Shown here in pieces: positions 32,506 to 53,585 of a stretch of DNA of 64,000 nucleotides. Positions within the stretch are counted from its first letter, which is position 1. The number at the start of each line of letters is the position of its first letter. The notes below the pieces were generated by a model. That model was given only the letters and a program-made list of their open reading frames with translations, searched no databases and was not told where the DNA came from. This DNA is from Chlorokybus atmophyticus (taxonomy: Eukaryota > Plantae > Mesostigma and Chlorokybus algae). The stretch spans positions 1,284,744-1,348,743 of the forward strand of contig RHPI01002069.1 in assembly GCA_009103225.1 (NCBI GenBank), in the 5' to 3' direction. The position numbers and the translations under genes are program-made.

Positions 32506-32832
32506 NNNNNNNNNNNNNNNNNNNNNNNNNNNNNNNNNNNNNNNNNNNNNNNNNNNNNNNNNNNNNNNNNNNNNNNNNNNNNNNNNNNNNNNNNNNNNNN
32601 NNNNNNNNNNNNNNNNNNNNNNNNNNNNNNNNNNNNNNNNNNNNNNNNNNNNNNNNNNNNNNNNNNNNNNNNNNNNNNNNNNNNNNNNNNNNNNNNNNNN
32701 NNNNNNNNNNNNNNNNNNNNNNNNNNNNNNNNNNNNNNNNNNNNNNNNNNNNNNNNNNNNNNNNNNNNNNNNNNNNNNNNNNNNNNNNNNNNNNNNNNNN
32801 NNNNNNNNNNNNNNNNNNNNNNNNNNNNNNNN
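32506..32832. other. Assembly gap (N run)
   Basis: Run of n. Confidence 1.
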
Positions 32833-34347
32833 CCCACACACCCCTTCTGCTGCTTGTGATGGAGTGTTTCAAGTTGAGAGCAAGAGACGCATAATACTTG
32901 TTGCTGTGCTGTCACCCTTGGCCAAAGATATCAACACTACATACAACACTACATACAAATGTATCTGGGCATACCACAATGCCAATTGATTGCTATGCAA
33001 CGCATGCATGCAGTCGTGCCATTGTCCATCCATAGGCCTGGACTGAGGATGCATGCGGGCACCCCTTTTACGCATACCTTGCAGTCATAGTAGCTGACCC
33101 TTTGTATACCCACAAGCCACAATGCAGCCATATGCAGCAGCGCGCAACACAGCATACCCCTTGTTTACACACGGCGATGGTATAGCACCCACACAAATCC
33201 CTGTCAGATCTTTTGTGCAGCCCCGCACATGTCCTGTACACGACCATGACTGCGAACATATGGCTGCGATTGATGAGGGAGTACACGACATTCATGCATG
33301 TCCATGCTGTGCAGAAATCGATGGAAACCTAAGAATGCAGCGGGGCTGAGAGTGACGGCAGTTTCGTAGAGGCGAGGGGCAGTCGGCTGATCGTCTCCGC
33401 CATGTGTGATCGGCACTAATGCAGATACGGCAGTGTGGCAGGTAAACCGCGACCATGCACACACACCCTTGCCTGCAGGTTCAGGTTCAGCCGACTGGTC
33501 CTTGCTATGGCGGTACGTCGTCATTGTTGGACTTGCCCTTAGTTGCACTTGGTGACTTGCATTCAGCCCCTAGCTAAGCCCTCTTGTGATTATAGCCGCG
33601 GTGCTGGGATGGGGTCCTGTAGCGCAAGGCCCTCCGACCACTGAGGCAGACGACGCAGTTGCTTGGCATGACGGGGTGTGTGTGTTGGATTGTGTTGATT
33701 GTGCACGGTTGAGCAGGGTGACAGTTAGGTATGGTGACAGCGCTGACAGCGAACGCTTGCATGTCGATAATAATAGAGGCGTCATTGTGCAGCTCTGGGT
33801 GGGTGGGTGGCTGGCTGTACGTTAAGGACTGCAGTGTGTTGCCATGTGTGCTTGCATATAAGGCATTGTGTGTAGCATGTAATGTAAGTGTACATCAAAT
33901 GCAGGACATGCATGTATTGCCTTGCTTGCTAGCTTGTGTGTGCGTGTGACTGTTGGCTACTGTGAGCACGGACCGCATGCTTGCTTGCATTCTTGCAAGT
34001 CAGCTAAGAGGCCCGAGGCGTTTTCACTGCGTCCCGAATAATGACAACTAGGGTGTGCATTTAGACCGGTGGTGACGTGAGCAGCGGTCACCGCGCGATG
34101 TCCATGCTTATGTGTAGCTGACTCTGTCGGCGTCATCGGGCGTTATCGCCGACGATGTTGGGAGGCCACCGTCGACTGCTGTTGTCGTCATGACGGTTGT
34201 ATCCGTATTGAAGCGCGCGAATGTGTGAGTTTTGAAAATGGGTTTGCACAGTGCTTGCGTGGGGCAGCTGCAAGCCCGGGCTTGGTTGTGCACCTGTGTG
34301 TGATAGGTGGCGGCGGCGGCTTGGTGGTGTTTGTGTCGGTTTAGGTC

Positions 34348-35344
34348 GTGGCTGCGTTGATGGATAGCCAGGGTGTGGGTGAGGGGGGGGAATTTGATGG
34401 CGAGCAGGTGGGTAGCATACATGTTGAGGCCACCCAAGGCGAGGGTTGTGGAGAAGCTGCAGACAAACCGGGGGAGGCTTCGCAGGCCGCCGAAGGGCGA
34501 GGGCGCAGGCCGAGGCCTGCTGCTGGGTCTGGTGCCACGTCGCCAGGTGACGTGGCAAAACACAAGAAGCGGAAGGTGCAGCAGAAAAACGCCTCTCAGA
34601 AGTATCGTGACAGTCGCAAGAATGTGATAGAGGCTCTCAGGGCGGATCTCAACCTGTCTGACGGGTTGAACGACAGCGAGGTGCTGAAGGCTGTTGCGAC
34701 TTCTGGACGCTGTTGGCGGTTGAATCCAGACCGGCGTACACTTCAGATGCTGCCGGTGAGTATAGTCGGTTGTGTTGTGCATCTGTTCTGGCAGGCACTG
34801 CGTATGGATTGATGGATGTATAGTGTGTGTCGTTTGGTCTCTCAATTTGACCATTGCGCAGGGTATCCATCCAGAGTGGCGACTGCCTGGCTCTCAAGGA
34901 GTGGGCGAAGACACCGCAAGGCGTGATTACACCCCGTATATTAGTCCACCTCTCGGCAGTACATATGTGGTAAGTGCTGTTGTGTGTTGTTGACTGGTGT
35001 ACGTGTACATGGCACTGGCGCAGCTTTGTGTTCAAGTGTTGAGGTGTTATTGACGTGTGCGTGCTGCGTGCTTGTGCCAGAGTGTACGCAGTGACAATCA
35101 GGAGAACATTGACCCTGCTACAAACATTGGCAATGGGTGTAGGCCTGCTGCGCCAAGCAGTTCGCATCACGGCAATCACGCTGCAAGACCTTTCGAGTCC
35201 CACATGCAAGGGTCGATGACGTCGCAGAGTTGTGACAACAGTGTGCAGCACGCATCGCAAGCATCTCAACAGCAGACCACTAGCAGACTGCCGCAGTATG
35301 GTACACCCAGGGCTCCTTTTGTCCGTCATTACCCTTACCCTTAG
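34348..35344 (+). CDS. 5' exons of the Academ element: basic bZIP/bHLH-like module (exons ~34348-34755, 34861-34969, ~35092-35300 or -35344)
   Basis: KHKKRKVQQKNASQKYRDSRKNVIEALRADLNLSDGLNDSEVLKAV; GT-AG introns. It may end at TAG 35342-35344 or splice on into the transposase. Confidence 0.55.
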
Positions 35345-35806
35345 TACCATGGCTAGGCAGTTGACTGAAATGTGCATGCTATGTGACTGCTAGGTAATGA
35401 GACGGCCAGTCCTGCAAGAAGGGGTGTGCCCTTGTTCAACATGAACGTTTGTGCGGACAACTTGTCCTCAGTGCAGGTCAGCTTTGTAGGGGTGTGCACT
35501 CTTGTCTCCCGTGACGTGTTATGTCATTTGGCAAATGCTTCGGTGCAAGTGGCAAAACTGTTGTGTGCATAGCGTACCATGCTCTACACACTCTCACCAG
35601 CCCATGCGCGTTCTAACTAAATCACTATCGCCCCACGAGTGTGAAAATCAGCGTGTGATATACTGCACATGCAATCCGCCTATTCATGTTATGCTAGTTG
35701 TGTAGCCAGTGTTGCATGGTCTTGTGCTCACATTCTTAGGTCTTGTGCTCACATGTTTAGGTCAGAGTTGTGCAACTGTGTTTGAGACCGGACTTGCCGT
35801 ATGCAG

Positions 35807-38800
35807 GATGTGCTGGCTGCATGGGAGTCTGATAGGTGCGGTTTGATGCGGCAAGTAGAAGATGCACTTAATGCCTTGGGGGCTGCGGAAATGGACAACC
35901 TGAACTTGCAGCATGCATTACATGAATGGGAGGTGAGGAGTGCGGGGCAGCATGCATCCGGGGGACAGCAACCGCATAAAAGTCCAGACTGTGGAGCATG
36001 CAACAATGATACCGAGCGAACATCGAGGAATCCAGTATTACAAAGGGAAGACCAACGGACGCATGAGCAGCTGCATGCAACTGTCTGTAGGCTAGAGGGT
36101 GAGCTTCTGGCTGCGCGAGCAGCTACTAGAAACAATGTGGAGGAGATGGATCGCCAGCGACTGGTGGCAGGCGAGCGAATTGACGGGGAGCGGCAACGGT
36201 TGTTGGCACTTGTGCAGCTGTGTGAGACTGAGCTGCGTGACTTGCAAGTTCGGTTCGACAGCTGCCAGCAAGACACAGAGGTGAGTATGAACCTACTGAT
36301 CTGTGCAAGTGTCTACAGCTGAGAGTGCTTGCTTGGCAGCGTGTGCAGCGCGAGAGTGAAGCTGCAGGGTCGCGCGTAGCACAGTCAGTGGAGGATGTGA
36401 GGGATCTGAAAAAACGGGAGGCACTTGCACTGGCCAAGGTGTTGCAGCTCGAGCACGACTGCTGCTGCAAGCAAGAAGTCATTGATGTGAGTGCAAGTGT
36501 TGTTGAGGTGGCCACACCTCTCATTTCTGTCAATCACAGTACAATGCTTGAGTGTGACCACGTGCAGGGCCTGCAGCGTGATCTGTCCGAAGCTGAAGAT
36601 GATGTGCGAGTGATGCATGGAAGAATGCAAGAGGCTGAGCAGATGCATGCACAAAGCACAGCACAAGTGTCGCAGCTGGAGGGTGAGGTCAACAGATTAC
36701 AGGATGCTCTCGATGCCCTGAGGCACACACCTGGTCAAGGTATGCCTGCGTGGCAGCAGCAGGCCTCGCGCCAAGAGGAGCATCTGTTATTGTTGAGGGA
36801 TGTAGCGGGAGGGTGCAGGGTGGGGGACTTGCCTGCAGAACCCTTGCGCTACATTGCGATGCAGCTGTCTGTTGCTGCTCATGTGAAAATGAGTGACGTT
36901 GGAGCGTTGTACAAGCTCAGTCATCATCAGAGAGGCAACCTGGTACGTACCGCGAGGCGTGTTCTGCAAGGAGCGCTCTTTGTAGTTACTGGGTCCAAGA
37001 GGTATGGGACGTTACTCATGAGGAGTTGGATGGACCCAGTTGCCTGCATGCTGGGGGTGGTGCAGCACGGGATTGAAGATCAGAGGGACGAGCAGGAGGC
37101 ATTGCCAGCACGCACCTTGGTGTACATCAGGCAGTTGGTAAAAGAGGAGGCGGCGAGGAGGTGCGAGTTTAACAGCAAGACTTGTGCCGATGAACGGTTT
37201 CTGGACGAAGAAAGAGAGCTGGGTGGTTGCCACCCAGATCTGCTGCGACTGTTCGAGGTCATGACGGGAACGTTGCCAACCTGCGCCGACCTACGGAACT
37301 GGCAGAGAGTCAAGCATCTGAGAGCTGTGTACCTACTGAGCTCTGTCATCTACACAAGGAACTCGCATGCGTACTCTCGCCTGCATGCCTCCCTGGGGGA
37401 AGCTGTCAGGTCCTTTGGTGGTTCACCTAAGCTGCAAACGCTGCTCAACAGACTTGGCGTATGCATCAGCACTGCTACGCTGGACCGCCACTCTATGTCA
37501 CGCGAATTTGAGGCTGGCAAAAACCCATGTCCTGTGCAACTTGGAGGCCAGGAACTAGTGGTGGCCAGCATAGATAACTGGGATTTCAGATGCGCAGGCC
37601 AGTTGCGCTTCAATGGGCGACCAGATCAGGACTTGCACTGTACGACCACATAGGTGGTTGTGCCACGGCCAACACAGCAGGCAGCAGCTCAGATGCATGA
37701 GGTGCCAGCTCAGAGATTCAGGACGCTGGCGGAAGCAGGCATTGAAGGACCTACCCGAGCCGAGGTGCCAATCCATCTCCCGAGACCGCGCACACACATT
37801 ACTCCACCCACAAGCGAGACAATTACTGTCAAGACAGATGCCGAGGATGCAAGAATGTGCAGCTTTCAGGTTGCATTGCACAACACTGTGTGGAAGAGGG
37901 CGGCTATGCGTGAGCTGCAGGAGAACAAGCTGAAGAACGTGCTCGCGTACCTGCTTGGTGCTGGCGAGTCACAGCACCCCAGCCATGTCTACTATATGCC
38001 ACTCCTCCCTTTCAACCCGGACAAGCCTGACCATCTGAAACTGGCGCTCCTAAAGCTGAAAGAGCACGTGAAGGTGGAAGAGTCAGGCTGCAAGATTCTC
38101 GTGGCTGGTGATCAAAAGACATTCAGCGTGATGCAATCATTAAAGCACACAGAACCTGGCTACTGGGACTGGCTTTTACCACTACCTGGTGACTGGCACG
38201 CTCTTTACAACCTCCTACCTGTATTGTTCAAGGTCTACTGGGACGCTGGATTGGATGAGATGGCTGTGTGCGTAGGCGTGCCGAGCAGTACAGCACGCAA
38301 TATGCTGGCTGAAGGGACAAACTGGAAGCGCATGCATGCGTACCTGCTGGAGTGCTGGGAGGCACTATACCGCTACCAGCTCCGTCTCTTCTTGGAGGCT
38401 CACCCAAATGTTAGCGAGGAACTTGGTATACCCAATGTGGCTGACATCAATCTCACAAATCACAGGCACTGCGCTGAGTTCTTCGCTTATGGATCTGCAC
38501 GTACAGAACAGGACGCCACATGGGCAATGTGGTGGAATTTCACCACAAGGGATGCAGCAGCATACCTGGCGCTCTACTTTGCTCTACGCACCAGCCAGTG
38601 GGATTTGAGGGTGGCAACATACAAGACACTGTCACCGCTGTCTTTCGCATGGGATCGCCCCCACTACCAGCGCCTGATCAGTCAGCATCTAGTGTACATC
38701 GTTCAAATGCCACCAGACATTCTGCAACAACTACAACAAGGGGCTTTCACCATTAGCGTGACTGGCAAGGGTGCAAGCAGTGTGGGATTAGATGAGGCAC

Positions 38801-41100
38801 ACGAGATGCTGATTAATAAGGACTTAAAGGCAACGTTGACTCGTCCCAATCCAGACTATTTGACACGCCGTACAGCTCATCTCTCCCATGCAGCTGTCCC
38901 AGTGAAGCGTCTATGGCATCTTCAGCGCATCAAAGATGGCCCACCAAACACACCTGCACTAGTTGTCCCCAGCGATAAGACGTGCATCACAGTGAAGGCA
39001 ATGGTGTCAATGCTGGAGACTGCAGCCGTTCTCACCGTGGTTAGAGATGAAAGGCTCGTGCATCTGATCAATGGAAGAGAGGCCAGCCCCGCGGCTGCCT
39101 CTGACTTGAGCAAACACTATGCAGTTGGACAGGACCAGTTTGAGCTGTATGTGAAGTGCGTGCACAGCAACGAGATGTCTGGGCACAACATTGGCAGGCG
39201 CTTTTGCCTGAAAACAATGCAAGCCAAGAAACTGGTGATCAACAAGGGTAGGGCATTGCGGTGCATCAAAAAAACCAAGACACTTATCTTGAAAAAGCTG
39301 GCAAAGTCTGGGGCGCCAGTGGATACCGTTATGGCATCATACCAAGCGATACCCATGGCTATCTTCGCGGAAGATGGCAGCATGCGCAAGGGGGACAAGT
39401 CCAAGTTTCTCACGCTACTCAGCAAGGGATGCCCAGCCTCTGAGCTGCTCAGACATCCAGTTGGCGTGCAAGCAATCATTGCGGAGGGAATGTTCTTCAT
39501 CAACAAGGGTCCAAGCACTGGTGTGCTCAACATGAGGGATTACCTGCTGCAAACAGTGCGCACCTGCCTGCTGCCAAGGTTGTACAACCCCAGCGTGCAA
39601 TCATTGCACGTGGTGTTCGATGATCCTGCCCATGCAAGTGGTGTCAAGTCCAGCTTGCAAGCGACCAGAGACAGTGGCGTTAGCAGGTCAGGCAGAAGCA
39701 TGACACTGGAAACAGAGGTGCCACGATCGTGGCGCGATCTGCTGGCTGACAGATCACTTAAGCGCAGCTTGTGCAGCCTCATGACGGAGCACATACCCGA
39801 GATGGTGGCCCCGTATCTGAGACCAGGGCAGACATTCATCATGGCTGGTGGGTCGGATTCTCCTGCATACAAAGACCTCGCCCGAGGTGTAACCCTCATG
39901 ACAGACGGATTGAGCTTCTTTGTGACTGATGCCTTCAAGTGCAACCATGCCGAGGCCGACAGCAGAGTGTGGCTGCATGCACATCGGTGTGACTACAGTT
40001 CCGTGCTCATCTACTCACCTGACACAGACGTCGCCATCATTGGGATGGCAGCCATTGAGCAATGGCAAACACCACAAAGGAGGTTGTACATTCAGCTGGC
40101 GCAGACAGGCCACTGCACCGCCAAGGCTCCGTTCTTGGACTTGAGTGCCCTGTACATGCACCTGGCACAAGTTCCACAGCTTAGACACATCCCACCAGAC
40201 CTGCGGGCCAGATTTTTGCTGTTGTTCTTTGCAGGAACAGGGTGCGACTATACTAGCTACTTCGCTGGCATTAGCAAGCCGTTCTTCTGGTCGGATGTCC
40301 TTGCTAGAGAGACAGAATTTATCATAGGGGGGGCTGACCTCCATGAAGCGACATGCTCCGCAGTGCTTCTCAGGTTGATCGGCTGTGCATACTTTGCGAA
40401 GCACAAGGCCATGTTTCCCGCCTACAACAGCGCAGCCAGCATCTTCTTCGACACCAATGGTGTTGCCGCTTGCAACGCAGACCCTGAAGCTCTGCGCGAG
40501 TGGCTGCACATTATCGCACAGGGCATATGGGAGAAGACTGCGGATAGCAAAGAAGACATGCCCTCACCGACCGCTCTTGAGCTACATGCACGGAGGAGCC
40601 TTTGGGTTGTCAGCATGTGGCTGCAGTGCTGCACTGCCCAAGTGGAGCAGCCACCACTGACACAGTATGGCTATGTTCACCAGGAAGGTTTGTACAAAGC
40701 GCAGATGGACACTGAGGAGAGCATGCAGGCCGCCAAAACAAGGGCACAGCTTCTGCTGCACGGGTGCAACTGCAAGAAGAATGCATGCAGAACACGCCAA
40801 TGCAAATGCAGAAAGAATGGCAGCAAGTGTGGCCAAAGTTGCGGCTGCCTCAACTGCCAGAACCTGGAGGACATACCCACACCAGCGCATGATTCAACAC
40901 CAACACCACCTGATGTGGAGGAGGGGACGGACGATGACTCTACCAGTTCACAGAGTGACGAGGAGGAAGATGAAGACCACATATCGCCGACGAGCAGGTT
41001 GGAGGAGGAGGACCAGGATGGTACACACGACGATGACGACAACACTATGGACGTGCATGCATGGCTCAACTCCATTCAGGATGCAGACATTGCTTGGTAG
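35807..41100 (+). pseudogene. Academ transposase-XPG-like-Cys-rich polyprotein, interrupted by one in-frame TAG (37651-37653)
   Basis: ORFs 36325-37653 and 37654-41100 are in the same frame. ASIDNWDF (37573), VAGDQKT (38110), LPGDWH, GLDEAHEMLINKD (38791); XPG/PIN-like NHAEADSR, SPDTDV, GCDYTSYFAGISK; PSPTALELHARR; C-terminal CNCK..C....C.C.....C...C.C..C.N; N-terminal coiled coil. Confidence 0.82.
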
Positions 41101-41619
41101 AATGAGCTAACAGTCTCGTGACAGAATAACACACTTGGTTGTACAATTGCGACACACACAGGTGTCTACCTGCATGCAACCCAACACGATGTGCAAGATG
41201 TATTGCCAATGCCAATGCACGGTGCCATCCTGCATGCATGCACTGACTCTCTGCACACAACACAAGCGAACTGACTCTGCACACACAAGCCATATGTACA
41301 AATCAGCTGCGACACCACACACAAGACCGAACTAACCATAAGCAGCACACTGTTGTCTAGTTGCCAGGCAGCTGCACAAACTCGGGTGCACCATGAACAG
41401 GGCAGAAGCAAGGTGCCTTGGGCAGTGGCGGCAGCACCACCATGCCAGGTTGCATGTACCCGCTAGGCCCCCTTGCAAGATCAAGCCATGCCAGACGCTG
41501 CCCTGCGCACAGAGCACTGATAATTCAGAACTCAAACACACACAGTAATCACAGGAAGGCACTATGCAAGTTGACTGAGAGAGACCACACAGACCTGCTC
41601 CAGGATCGTCACCCATCTG

Positions 41620-41845
41620 CCAGCATGCCCGCGAATTCGGCACACCACGCACAAGATGTTCCACGCACACGATGTCAGGCAATATGGGCCCATAGGCATC
41701 AGCACGCGGCTCTTCCGCATGTCGGGTCAAGGCGAGCTCGAAACTGTTGCAGAACTGGATGTGCAGCGCCTCGAGCTCACCGCCTTTCATCTCACGAGGA
41801 TACACCATCACGCCTTTCAGGGTCACCTGGCTCATAAAGACGAGA
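41620..41845 (-). CDS. Possible exon of a further, inward-facing gene in the right arm of the Academ element
   Basis: GC3-rich frame MSQVTLKGVMVYPREMKGGELEALHIQFCNSFELALTRHAEEPRADAYGPILPDIVCVEHL within ORF 41332-42258; no family recognised. Confidence 0.3.
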
Positions 41846-42742
41846 CCCGCAGCATCCAACAAGATAACAGCAATTAAGCATAGCAGTCCACCAGCCGAGA
41901 TAATGCAAACACACACAGCTGGGCCGCAGCACCTGCCGCATGGCGGGGAAGCAGAAGTTTGTGTCGCGCTCCACAGGGTAGGCTGGCGGCACTCTCTCCT
42001 CGCCACCACCAGCATCCTTGAACCCACCCCCAAACGGAGGCGCCCCACGCCCATCTCTTCCGCCGCCCATAAAACAGTGTATAGGCATCCCGCGCCCCCG
42101 CGCGCCCCCTTCATTGCGACCAGAGCTGCTAGGCACACCACCTCTACCGCCCTCGCCGACGCCCGCCATGCCGCCACCGCCTCTACCCACCACCACAGCA
42201 ACAAGCTGCACAACCTGCTGCACACTGGCGCCAAAACCCTCGCCCGCGGGGTCGACATGCGTTGACGTCGATCGAAGGCGACATGTCAGTGTTTTGACGC
42301 CTTATCACCGACGGTGATAACGTCAACACAGCGCTGCCTGCAACGACAAAAGCGGCCTGCGTCGATGCCTGCAGTCGCCAGCACAGGCCATCAGCAGTCA
42401 CGTTTCACGCGCGATGACGTCAGCAGCCTGAGCTTGACATCACCCAGCCGGACGCAATGAACGCCTTAAGGGTTTGTAGCCATGGGTGGTAGCACAAAGT
42501 GCAAGTGAGTGGTTAATCTTAGTAATGGTAATATGGCAGTGTGCCAGGCTCCACAGCAGCACGCCAAGCAAGGGCAGGTAGCAGCAAGTTGCGGCGCCTC
42601 ACCTTTACAAGCAGCGCCACAATGAGCAAGTTGCTTACGTGTGCAATGCATGCCCAACAAGGTGGGGCTGTACCGGTAGTGATTGGTAGGGTAGGCGAGC
42701 CTGGGAGTTGTTTGTGCATCGGCGTTTGGTAGGTGTCCAACG

Positions 42743-42760
42743 TATATATATATATATATA
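42743..42760. repeat. (TA)n microsatellite
   Basis: Direct reading; followed by an n. Confidence 0.95.
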
Positions 42761-43046
42761 NTTGACGATGACACGCAGCGCGTCTTGCATCGTCTCGGAG
42801 AGGAACTTCTTCCGGCCTTTGTGAAGAATAGCCATTATCTTCTTCTCCCAATGCTTTTCCCTTTCCTCCCGCTGAAGTTCAAGCGATACAGCCTACCGGG
42901 TAAAAGCTTTCTTTGTGGCAGCGAGGCCAAGTGTCTGAGCTTGGTGCGCCTCGACAGTCTTGGTGTAGATGGCGGCCATTGTCTCCTGCAAACACTGGTA
43001 ACAAGTTAGGGCTCTGTGTGGAATGTTTGGTGGCCTACATGGCAAC

Positions 43047-43047
<1 letters not shown>

Positions 43048-43104
<57 letters not shown>
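43048..43104. repeat. (TA)n microsatellite, ~28 units
   Basis: Direct reading. Confidence 0.97.
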
Positions 43105-43114
<10 letters not shown>

Positions 43115-44290
43115 ATATAGTCGAGGAGAGTAGTGTGCAACGCATGTGGAACGTGTGCGAAGCACCAATAACATGCCGCAAATATTGCATCACGTACTTG
43201 ATACACCGATGTACCTAACTCGCATACGAGCTGCTTAACAAGCAAGCTCAAGCTGATTGAGCTTGCCCCTTGAAGGAGCCAGTGGTGTAGACAACCACCT
43301 TGCCATTTTTATACACCAGCAACATGCAAAGCAAATGATAGATTAGGCTAGGGCCAAGATAGAGCTTTACACTTAGATTGCTTTAAGGCAACTAGACACT
43401 AAGTTAGACCCTCATGGACGGGAGTAGGCAGCGGGCTTGGCAAGACGCAACAACAACAACCTGCGGAGCGCATGGACATATATACGAGTTGTATATATGC
43501 AGCACAAATACATGATGCGTGCGGTTGAGTCCATTATTTATCACTTGTTGGAATTGCATCTATGCATCATGACACCATGTTAAAGTTGATTGTTGGCTGC
43601 ATGTTAATTGGCCATTGATAGGTGTATGACTTACATGCTATTATAGCGAAATTGGTATCGGCTCATCGCTGGCTGATTCACTACAATAAGCATTAATGTT
43701 GTTACCACTCTCGTATGCATCAATTTAATTATGTGCGTATACTTGTGTGTTGCTCTTGCCAAATGCTTACACGCTTGCTTGCTACTGGTCCATGCATGGA
43801 TCCATGCATGTACCATTATATATGAATATGTTGCAGCAACAACGCATATAGATTTGATGCATTATGTATTGTAGTAAGCGCTTCGTGCTTAAAATTGATA
43901 TGTATATGTAACCACACTTGAATCACGATTTTATAAATCATGTGCATTAAGCATACATGTCATGGGAATCATTTATATACACACTACTTGTGCCAATACT
44001 GGCACGGGGCGCTTAGGCACTATGTGTATGATTGCACATAATATGATGTTCACTTCATTTATTAATATGTACAACAAAAACATTGATCTCTCATTTTTCC
44101 TCATATAATAATAATGGTGATTATGTGTTGCAATTTACGCAACAACCATATATATTGTGATGTCGCAAAATCCTCGGTCAAAGTAGCGGCCAAAAAGTTT
44201 TATTTCGTACTTACTCGGCCATGCAATGCATTCTTAATAAGCTTGATTTCAAAACCACTAGGATGCATAAGTATTGCAGAAAAAGTTTTT

Positions 44291-45253: not shown

Positions 45254-45370
45254 GAGTCCAGGCGGCAAGCAGGGTGGCGACCGGGCTGGCGTCGTCGACG
45301 GGGTGAGCCGCGGGTTTGGCTGGAGGGATTAGGGTTGTAGGGGGGGGCGGGGCCGTCGGTCAGCTTGGGC

Positions 45371-46579
45371 ATGGCGTCCCCGCCGGCGGCCAAGCAGTGG
45401 CTGAGTTTTCTCAACGACAACGCTCTGCTGGACGTGGAGGAGGCGCCCGCCACCAACCCCTTTTTCTGGTGTAGCGGCGGAGGGGCCGCTGGTGCTGGTA
45501 GTGCGGGGGTTGTCAGCGCTGGGAAGAGGCGGAGAGAGGACGAGAAGAGCGAGGAGCTATGTGGGGTAGCTGCAGGGGTGTCCGCGCACGGCCTCAAGAG
45601 CAAAGCTTGCCGTGAGAAGGAGCGGCGTGGCCGGCTGAACGAGCGCTTTGAGGAGCTTGCGGTTGCGGTAGATCCCGGCCGCCCGCCCAAGACAGACCGT
45701 GCGGCCGTGCTCGCTGACGCCGTCCGGGTCGTTGAGGCCCTTAGGGAGGATGTTAGGCAGTTGCGGGAGGCCAATGTGCGACTTATGGACGCCAATCGCG
45801 ACCTCAAGGTGTGTCCACCTTGTCATACAGAATATTAAACACATACGTCGTCTACCATTTTGCCGCTGGTTTTCTTGGCCGCGGGTCAACAGCGTTGGTC
45901 TTTCTGTGGAGGTTGTTGTGCTTTGTTCTGTAGCCGTCTTTGTTCGTCGCTGCATTTATGTACGGCTTTTTTGGCCATGGGACAACAGCACATGTCGCTT
46001 GATAAAGGCTGTCTGGCTTCGTCCTGTCCCCGTTGTTACGTTGTCCATCGTTGCCATAGCTTTATGTAGCGGTAGTTGGGTTCAATCGCAGTTATATCGG
46101 CGTGGTGCTGAATGGCCACTTGCTGGCCAATCAGCAACTTGGTCAGTGCGCTGGTGCAAAGGCAAATGCACTTTGCTAATTGCATCCAGTCGAAATTTCT
46201 TGGCTGCTGCGCCTGTTTGTAAGCAGCTGCTGGACGAGAAATGTCTGTGCTCTCTGTTTGGGCATTTGCGTGTCCGTGTGCGCATTGGATGCAACAGTAG
46301 TAAAGTCAAGTCCGTTTTCAGGCTGAGAAGAATGAGCTGCGAGACGAAAAGGCAGCACTCAAGGCCGAGAAGGTTCGACTGGACCATCAATTAAAGCAAT
46401 GGTCGGCTATGGCACCGCCCGGTGCTGCAGCCGCAGCGGCGGCAGCGGCAGCCCCTCCTGGTGTTCCAACACACAAAACGCAACCGATGATCATGCCGAT
46501 GCCCATGGCGTGGCACTGGTTACCACCGCAGATACTGGATACATCACAAGATCATGTACTGCGCCCTCCCGTTGCTTAA
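45371..46579 (+). CDS. bHLH-ZIP transcription factor of plant subgroup IVc (ILR3/bHLH105-like); exons 45371-45808 and 46322-46579
   Basis: KACREKERRGRLNERFEEL...DPGRPPKTDRAAVLADAVRVV, zipper AEKNELRDEKAALKAEK, C-terminus WLPPQILDTSQDHVLRPPVA*. Confidence 0.93.
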
Positions 46580-48582: not shown

Positions 48583-48815
48583 NNNNNNNNNNNNNNNNNN
48601 NNNNNNNNNNNNNNNNNNNNNNNNNNNNNNNNNNNNNNNNNNNNNNNNNNNNNNNNNNNNNNNNNNNNNNNNNNNNNNNNNNNNNNNNNNNNNNNNNNNN
48701 NNNNNNNNNNNNNNNNNNNNNNNNNNNNNNNNNNNNNNNNNNNNNNNNNNNNNNNNNNNNNNNNNNNNNNNNNNNNNNNNNNNNNNNNNNNNNNNNNNNN
48801 NNNNNNNNNNNNNNN
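48583..48815. other. Assembly gap (N run)
   Basis: Run of n. Confidence 1.
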
Positions 48816-53433: not shown

Positions 53434-53585
53434 NNNNNNNNNNNNNNNNNNNNNNNNNNNNNNNNNNNNNNNNNNNNNNNNNNNNNNNNNNNNNNNNNNN
53501 NNNNNNNNNNNNNNNNNNNNNNNNNNNNNNNNNNNNNNNNNNNNNNNNNNNNNNNNNNNNNNNNNNNNNNNNNNNNNNNNNNNNN
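53350..53585. repeat. (GA)n microsatellite (53350-53433) running into an assembly gap (53434-53585)
   Basis: Direct reading. Confidence 0.95.

Follow-up and report, generated by a model that had tools for sequence, protein, structure and literature searches.

We examined a 64-kb window (the whole stretch of 64,000 nucleotides analysed here, to which all positions refer) of the genome of the basal streptophyte Chlorokybus atmophyticus and found a small three-exon gene at 34360–35344 on the (+) strand that is spliced and transcribed just inside what is probably an AcademX-type DNA transposon. To us it is an even call that the segment 34348–36720 is the left part of this single transposon and holds two separate things, and we hold with about equal conviction and doubt that these are an expressed orphan gene borne by the element, whose product is probably nuclear, and beside it a transposase gene beginning at 35801. 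The initial annotation had read the same segment as the 5' exons of an Academ element, encoding a basic module of basic leucine zipper (bZIP) or basic helix–loop–helix (bHLH) type that could be spliced in frame to the transposase. The exons proved to be real, transcribed and inside the delimited element; the in-frame splice found no support, since it is without RNA, uses weak sites, keeps the frame at chance level and leads into a frame that has its own ATG at 35801. All results on the element and on the small gene rest on one copy.

The RNA data were contigs from three transcriptome-like runs of the same organism (X1, X2 and X3, from two studies), which we compared with positions 34000–39900; such contigs demonstrate presence, not absence. 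Because an X1 contig of depth 4.8 joins 34755 to 34862 and 34969 to 35081, in both cases with GT..AG on the (+) strand, exons 1–3 are a real spliced (+)-strand transcript. Exon 1 (34360–34755) comprises 132 codons from ATG 34360, the first ATG of the open reading frame (ORF) 34348–34812, in which the peptide KRKVQQKNASQKYRDSRKNVIEAL...SEVLKAV lies where the initial annotation had placed it. RNA covers this exon from about 34420, and its donor at 34755|34756 is confirmed by RNA. Exon 2 (34862–34969, 36 codons) is contained in the X1 contig, as are the joints of the two phase-0 introns on either side of it, intron 1 at 34756–34861 (106 nucleotides (nt), GTGAGT..GCAG) and intron 2 at 34970–35080 (111 nt, GTAAGT..CCAG). 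Exon 3 (35081–35344, within ORF 35057–35344) encodes a low-complexity tail rich in Ser, Gln and His; it is covered by RNA to 35271, remains open to the TAG at 35342–35344 and matches no Pfam family. The small-gene frame is open for 255 codons over the two introns, giving a protein of 255 amino acids if there is no further splice.

A contig of depth 781 from run X3 is 90–95% alike to the locus and matches only 34121–34219 and 34341–34432, that is, the 5' untranslated region and the first 24 codons. It is without 34220–34340 and carries unlike sequence beyond both sides, and therefore derives from a highly expressed paralogous piece elsewhere in the genome.

The element was delimited by reading its ends. 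On the left, a TAAG at 34005–34008 is followed by a terminus that starts with AGGC at 34009 (34005–34035, (+) strand) and holds the imperfect inverted repeat AGGC[CCGAGGC]GTT[TT]CA(C/T)TGCGTCC. On the right, the terminus ...GGACGCAATGAACGCCT ends at 42466 and the second TAAG follows at 42467–42470 (42447–42470, (+) strand). Thus TAAG lies directly outside both ends, and each end begins AGGC. The match between the inverted ends has p ~0.004 for this fixed pair of ends and is not significant in a region-wide search. On these sequence features, 34009–42466 is a probable AcademX-type DNA transposon. PMC10045372 describes AcademX elements as encoding a nuclease and generating target-site duplications of 3–4 bp. 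Because the TAAG duplication and the inverted ends starting with AGGC enclose its ATG, which stands 351 bp inside the left end, the small gene probably lies within the element. The base composition shifts near 33600–34000, close to the left end. A repeat search for long inverted repeats gave microsatellite matches only, neither blastn nor tblastn found a further copy of the element within the window, and an Rfam scan of 33500–36200 returned no family.

The transposase gene proper most likely starts at ATG 35801 with a coiled-coil region. Its probable first coding exon, which we call exon 5 (35801–36280, (+) strand), has a coiled-coil-like product and a frame that opens only at 35786; the ATG stands five bases before the acceptor that the initial annotation had proposed. 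A word search with this exon, covering proteins of 95–303 amino acids, found no relatives. Two sense introns, 36281–36339 and 36487–36567, are predicted with good site scores and are absent from the RNA contigs. The rest of the N-terminal region (36340–37650, (+) strand) shows homology, from about 36990 onwards, to the corresponding N-terminal part in Academ-type homologues; an IDNWD motif closes it. In a local phmmer comparison with 53 homologues, E values went down to 5e-15, and Pfam gave weak coiled-coil matches. Because the similarity to the homologues starts only at about 36990, the coiled coil and the 5' exons are lineage-specific. Read from ATG 35801 the gene has about 1,720 codons, compared with 1,700–1,790 amino acids in the long homologues, and adding exons 1–4, the fourth being the proposed linking exon discussed below, would exceed every homologue.

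The transposase frame is divided by an in-frame TAG at 37651–37653 ((+) strand), ORF 36325–37653 and ORF 37654–41100 (here ORF A and ORF B) being a single frame cut by this codon. The same letters stand in an unspliced X3 contig over 37495–37784, and with this interruption an intact giant fusion protein, as envisaged earlier, is not supported. The TAG could lie inside an unrecognised sense intron. Downstream of it, the transposase body (37654–41100, (+) strand, 1148 codons) contains a DDE-type region of the DUF6589 family, a FEN/XPG-like 5'-nuclease and a C-terminal CXC domain of Tesmin/LIN54 type, and the earlier identification of this ORF as a transposase with an XPG-like nuclease and a Cys-rich part was borne out by Pfam, by homologues and by Foldseek. 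Pfam gave DUF6589 at 1.6e-8 and TCR (Tesmin/TSO1 CXC) at 1.4e-4. The 53 homologues, several of them named CXC-domain proteins from mussels, sponges and annelids, align at ~30% identity with E values down to 6e-100, and every invariant column of a 16-sequence alignment is retained. In a profile search the CXC domain of LIN54 reached E 1.6e-4 and EXO1 no better than E 0.74; an alignment-based AlphaFold model (mean predicted local distance difference test, pLDDT, 70) was matched by Foldseek with probability 1.00 to XRN2, a mycobacterial FEN, EXO1, Rad2 and FEN1.

The CXC domain, at 40759–40863 (residues 1036–1070 of ORF B), is of the Tesmin/LIN54 type, a known DNA-binding fold, so that even in the absence of the 5' module the transposase possesses a candidate domain for DNA binding. 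The succession of transposase, XPG/FEN-like nuclease and Cys-rich domain agrees with AcademX. We take the homologues to be Academ proteins on the strength of their architecture and of prior knowledge. The Academ superfamily and AcademX were reportedly described by Kapitonov and Jurka in 2010 and by Kojima in 2020, both cited in PMC10045372. Like AcademX, the present element has one large transposase with a DDE-type region (DUF6589 in Pfam), a FEN/XPG-like nuclease and a Cys-rich C-terminus, together with putative short inverted ends and a putative 4-bp duplication; unlike AcademX, it carries in addition an orphan gene of three exons upstream, and its long coiled-coil N-terminal part is dissimilar to the 53 homologues. 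To our knowledge, an upstream orphan gene has not been described in AcademX.

As judged from its sequence, the module encoded by exon 1 belongs to no known family. The exon-1 product (132 amino acids) gave no phmmer hits at E 0.001 among 1.84 billion cluster representatives, and no match up to E 10 to the Pfam families for bZIP (bZIP_1, bZIP_2 and bZIP_Maf), HLH (PF00010) or BES1_N (PF05687); the same Pfam library does detect HLH (3.3e-7) in a host gene at 45365–45835. In a phmmer search of the PDB at E up to 10 there was noise only, which included de novo beta-trefoils, and 5zd4, 7vn2 and the solved bHLH chains went unmatched. The ESM Atlas yielded no relatives of exon 1, either by features or by shape. 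In all these searches the exons were used separately; they were joined only to count stops and frames.

Like a bZIP, the module has a helix rich in Lys and Arg, in which an N/Q-x7-R spacing is loosely kept. Unlike a bZIP, it lacks leucine heptads: there is no L-x6-L-x6-L run in exon 1, and at most three of eight a/d positions are hydrophobic. A helix-breaking SDGLNDS segment stands directly after the basic part, and the predicted helix ends at residue 97. With the lack of a Pfam match, these features rule out a bZIP. The preceding residues 1–61 are rich in Gly, Glu and Ala and predicted to be disordered, and the basic stretch KHKKRKV... begins at residue 67. KHKKRKV is the core of an SV40-type nuclear localisation signal, and such a signal is the simplest reading of the basic stretch.

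A single-sequence AlphaFold model left residues 1–61 disordered and gave pLDDT 75–83 over residues 81–120. In this prediction the module (residues 62–131, encoded at 34543–34752 on the (+) strand) consists of a basic helix with a start resembling a nuclear localisation signal (62–97), a loop, a second helix (105–114, SEVLKAVATS) and a beta-hairpin (118–131). Foldseek found nothing significant for this predicted helix–loop–helix; its first row was BZR1 (5zd4), at E ~1 and 24% identity. VIA-align, an unbiased structural search that is independent of Foldseek, compared the model with 48,161 PDB representatives, and bHLH domains filled 17 of the 20 best rows, with Z 3.7–5.1 and root mean square deviations (rmsd) of 2.2–3.3 Å over near-whole domains. 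The best bHLH rows were 8osj_M (Z 5.1, rmsd 2.4 Å over 52 residues) and 8ott_M (Z 5.1), and the bHLH rows comprised CLOCK–BMAL1, MYC–MAX, AhR–ARNT, Ino2–Ino4, Ascl1–E12, SCL–E47, TWIST1–TCF4, TYE7, NeuroD1–E47, NPAS4–ARNT, MyoD–E47, USF2, Mad–Max, Max, Cbf1 and SREBP; BZR1 reached Z 4.5. The enrichment for one fold is striking, yet because Z is only 3.7–5.1 the description 'bHLH-like' is a weak lead. What stands of the bZIP/bHLH-like module of the initial annotation is therefore a predicted helix–loop–helix with bHLH and BZR1 neighbours (Z at most 5.1); bZIP does not stand, nor, by sequence, does any transcription-factor family.

The predicted topology of basic helix, loop and helix is like that of bHLH and BES1/BZR1 proteins (PDB 5zd4), whereas the module has neither a Pfam HLH or BES1_N match nor a Glu in its basic helix. 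In BZR1, helix 2 begins with an EVLKA-type motif and is followed by a Trp-containing hairpin, to which the exon-1 module is similar. Aligned with BZR1, the module appears to have Leu and Ala at the positions of Cys63 and Cys73. Both cysteines are conserved in the BZR1 DNA-binding domain (PMC12668046).

Our working model for the small gene (34360–35344, 255 amino acids) is that its product would have a disordered acidic and Gly-rich head, a 36-residue basic helix opened by KHKKRKV, a loop, a short helix 2, a hairpin and a low-complexity tail. It may be a nuclear accessory protein borne by the element, the basic opening serving nuclear import, and it may contain a degenerate helix–loop–helix of bHLH/BZR1 type for DNA binding or dimerisation. 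By analogy, its role in transposition might resemble that of the second, DNA-binding protein which PIF/Harbinger or En/Spm elements encode. The small gene and the transposase would be translated separately.

Several points weigh against this model. Neither a promoter nor an RNA start backs a separate transposase gene, and the transposase of the copy examined carries a stop, a lone TAG in an otherwise fully conserved frame of 1,590 codons. The contig of the small transcript is of low depth and ends at 35271, and the transcript may continue into the transposase. The small-gene module has no sequence relative of any kind, and its basic stretch KHKKRKVQQKNASQKYRDSRKN is without Glu, hence has none at the E-box-contact position. 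The fold comes from a lone single-sequence model whose confidence is moderate, and Z values of up to 5.1 are, by the search's own warning, within the chance range for small helical pieces. A homodimer prediction with two copies of residues 59–132 scored 0.02 against a mark of 0.32, a score that says nothing either way.

The RNA over the transposase is largely of the opposite strand. From 36014 on, the joints in all three runs skip CT..AC on the (+) strand, that is, GT–AG introns of the minus strand, one of them GC–AG. The resulting spliced antisense RNA (36014–39900, (–) strand) is represented by contigs of X1, X2 and X3 and has its 5' end at or past ~41216, one contig extending at least 1.3 kb past 39900. 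It contains at least 11 introns, at 36262–36332 (GC–AG), 36465–36730, 36875–36950, 37051–37115, 37299–37374 (alternative), 37638–37754, 38056–38218, 38495–38565, 38954–39035, 39445–39543 (alternative end 39563) and 39626–39796, and the minus-strand consensus sites are good, for example GTGTGTGC...TTGCAG and GTACGTAC...GAGCAG. The antisense contigs share a 3' end at 36014–36027, and a TGTAA 24 nt upstream of it is a likely poly(A) signal. In X1 the antisense depth is 37–84, or 8–17 times that of the sense contig of exons 1–3 in the same run, and in that run the exon 1–3 contig is present while all transposase contigs are antisense-spliced. The contigs of X1–X3 contain no sense splice of transposase exons, and the other cover of the transposase consists of a few unspliced X3 pieces of low depth.

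A coding antisense RNA can be ruled out for the known part, in which each frame has 22–35 stops after splicing and there is no long ORF. Antisense introns 36262–36332 and 37638–37754 keep the frame; we rejected this as a signal because it follows trivially from ORF A and ORF B being one frame, and it fails at the other introns. In the stretch that separates the transposase stop from the right end of the element, the minus strand at 41335–42258 carries a 308-codon ORF and Gly/Arg-rich ORFs that match no Pfam family. It is a possible location of the first exon of the antisense RNA. Antisense transcripts of transposons are known, examples being the products of the LINE-1 antisense promoter and precursor transcripts of small interfering RNAs. 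Like these, the opposite-strand RNA described here spans the transposase ORF; unlike them, it extends over more than 5 kb of the genome, is spliced at no fewer than 11 canonical introns, carries a likely TGTAA poly(A) signal and exceeds the sense RNA in abundance. Independently of the small gene, it gives a useful entry point for studying how a basal streptophyte controls transposons.

How the small gene relates to the transposase was the point at issue in the initial annotation, according to which both belong to one alternatively spliced unit: retention at 35301 would give a short DNA-binding regulator, and splicing a fusion with the coiled coil, transposase, XPG-like nuclease and CXC domain. 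The landmarks of this proposal (35301–35806, (+) strand) are all present by translation and arithmetic. There is a GT at 35301, an 83-nt segment at 35394–35476 and an AG ending at 35806; removal of 35301–35393 and 35477–35806 keeps the frame (...PQY-G|NETASPARR...SSVQ|DVLAAWES...), and read-through of the donor stops at the TAG at 35342–35344. GTAC-type donors are in use elsewhere at the locus, there is no gap in coding orientation between the two parts, and comparable alternative splicing is general knowledge for En/Spm and the P element. Nor does a green-algal TGTAA signal separate the two parts, although none follows either of the sense stop codons, which makes its absence uninformative. 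Against this, no RNA contig covers 35272–36013, so that neither the joints 35300>35394 and 35476>35807 nor intron retention are seen, and the introns and linking exon as proposed are unsupported. We built a splice-site matrix from the 13 RNA-confirmed introns of the locus, which score 6.1–11.9 as donors and 4.6–11.3 as acceptors, values somewhat inflated by self-scoring; the proposed sites score 3.1 (donor) and 1.2 (acceptor) at intron 35301–35393 and 4.9 (donor) and 4.0 (acceptor) at intron 35477–35806, so that both donors and both acceptors fall below every confirmed site. Enumeration of the GT..AG paths that lead from exon 3 to the frame of exon 5 without a frameshift or a stop gave 31 with a single intron and 2,815 with two introns, and the in-frame link is therefore not more than chance. 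Moreover, the transposase frame has an ATG of its own, no homologue is as long as the fusion would be, the homologues are dissimilar upstream of ~36990, and the long frame is broken by the TAG in the copy examined. We consider a single alternatively spliced unit distinctly unlikely.

The main rival reading, which we consider doubtful but to which we attach more weight, grants the small gene its expression and denies it a function: a captured or lineage-specific host 5' exon and a de novo ORF would have come under a promoter at the left end, the look of a fold being an artefact of a basic amphipathic stretch. Such an origin would agree with the lack of relatives in the searched databases, with a protein of which more than half is disordered or of low complexity, with expression as low as depth 4.8 and with the weak structural Z values; the depth-781 contig of X3, which shares only 34121–34219 and 34341–34432 with the locus, suggests a mosaic. 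It sits less easily with a frame of 255 codons that two spliced introns leave open, with a structured part that reaches pLDDT 75–83 without an alignment, and with nearest structures that, among 48,161 tested, belong almost exclusively to one DNA-binding fold. That the small gene is instead a host gene flanking the element seems very improbable. The inverted ends are admittedly short, imperfect and not significant region-wide; however, TAAG stands outside both AGGC ends and matches the 3–4 bp duplications given for AcademX in PMC10045372, the base composition changes near 33600–34000, and a sequence search found no homologue of the gene in any other organism. In an extension of the model of a separate, element-borne gene, a DNA-binding accessory gene of plant type (BZR1/bHLH-like) would target or regulate the AcademX element while the abundant, intron-rich, polyadenylated antisense RNA, transcribed from the opposite end of the element, restrains the transposase, which would amount to two-layer self-regulation. 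We think this unlikely as a whole, and we know of no description of self-regulation of this kind for the Academ superfamily.

PIF/Harbinger elements encode a Myb-like ORF1 protein and a transposase, and En/Spm elements make TnpA and TnpD by alternative splicing. Under our working model the present element would be like them in that the catalytic protein has next to it, or in one spliced unit with it, a small protein that is nuclear and may bind DNA; unlike them, it shows no sequence or family relation to their proteins, and here both DNA binding and interaction with the transposase are hypothetical. Academ elements are known as transposons with one gene. If real, a further nuclear protein borne by the element and resembling a helix–loop–helix might serve to recognise its ends or to regulate it, as in Harbinger and En/Spm, and could point to a possible route by which transposons seed transcription-factor domains of plant type. 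At present the evidence extends no further than to an orphan gene that is expressed and whose fold prediction is weak.

Some further observations concern the element and its surroundings. Within the leftmost 1.5 kb of the element, TGACGTG occurs four times, always on the (+) strand, at 34073, 34548, 35051 and 35512, with a spacing of 461–503 bp; in the window as a whole it was observed 14 times against 10.6 expected, and since the local cluster was spotted post hoc it may be due to chance. The same caution applies to three TGACGT sites clustered at 42263–42420, near the right end. The E-box CACGTG is rarer in the window than expected (8 against ~27). The exon at 45365–45835 on the (+) strand, 3 kb to the right of the element, has no sequence relation to the exon-1 module; it belongs to a host gene and encodes a genuine plant-type bHLH (Pfam HLH 3.3e-7, bHLH_IRO3 3.9e-6). 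Just to the right of the element lie (TA)n and (TG)n microsatellites, at 43045–43119 and 42742–42761, together with a single N, and assembly gaps (runs of N) occupy 32506–32832, 48583–48815 and 53434–53585.

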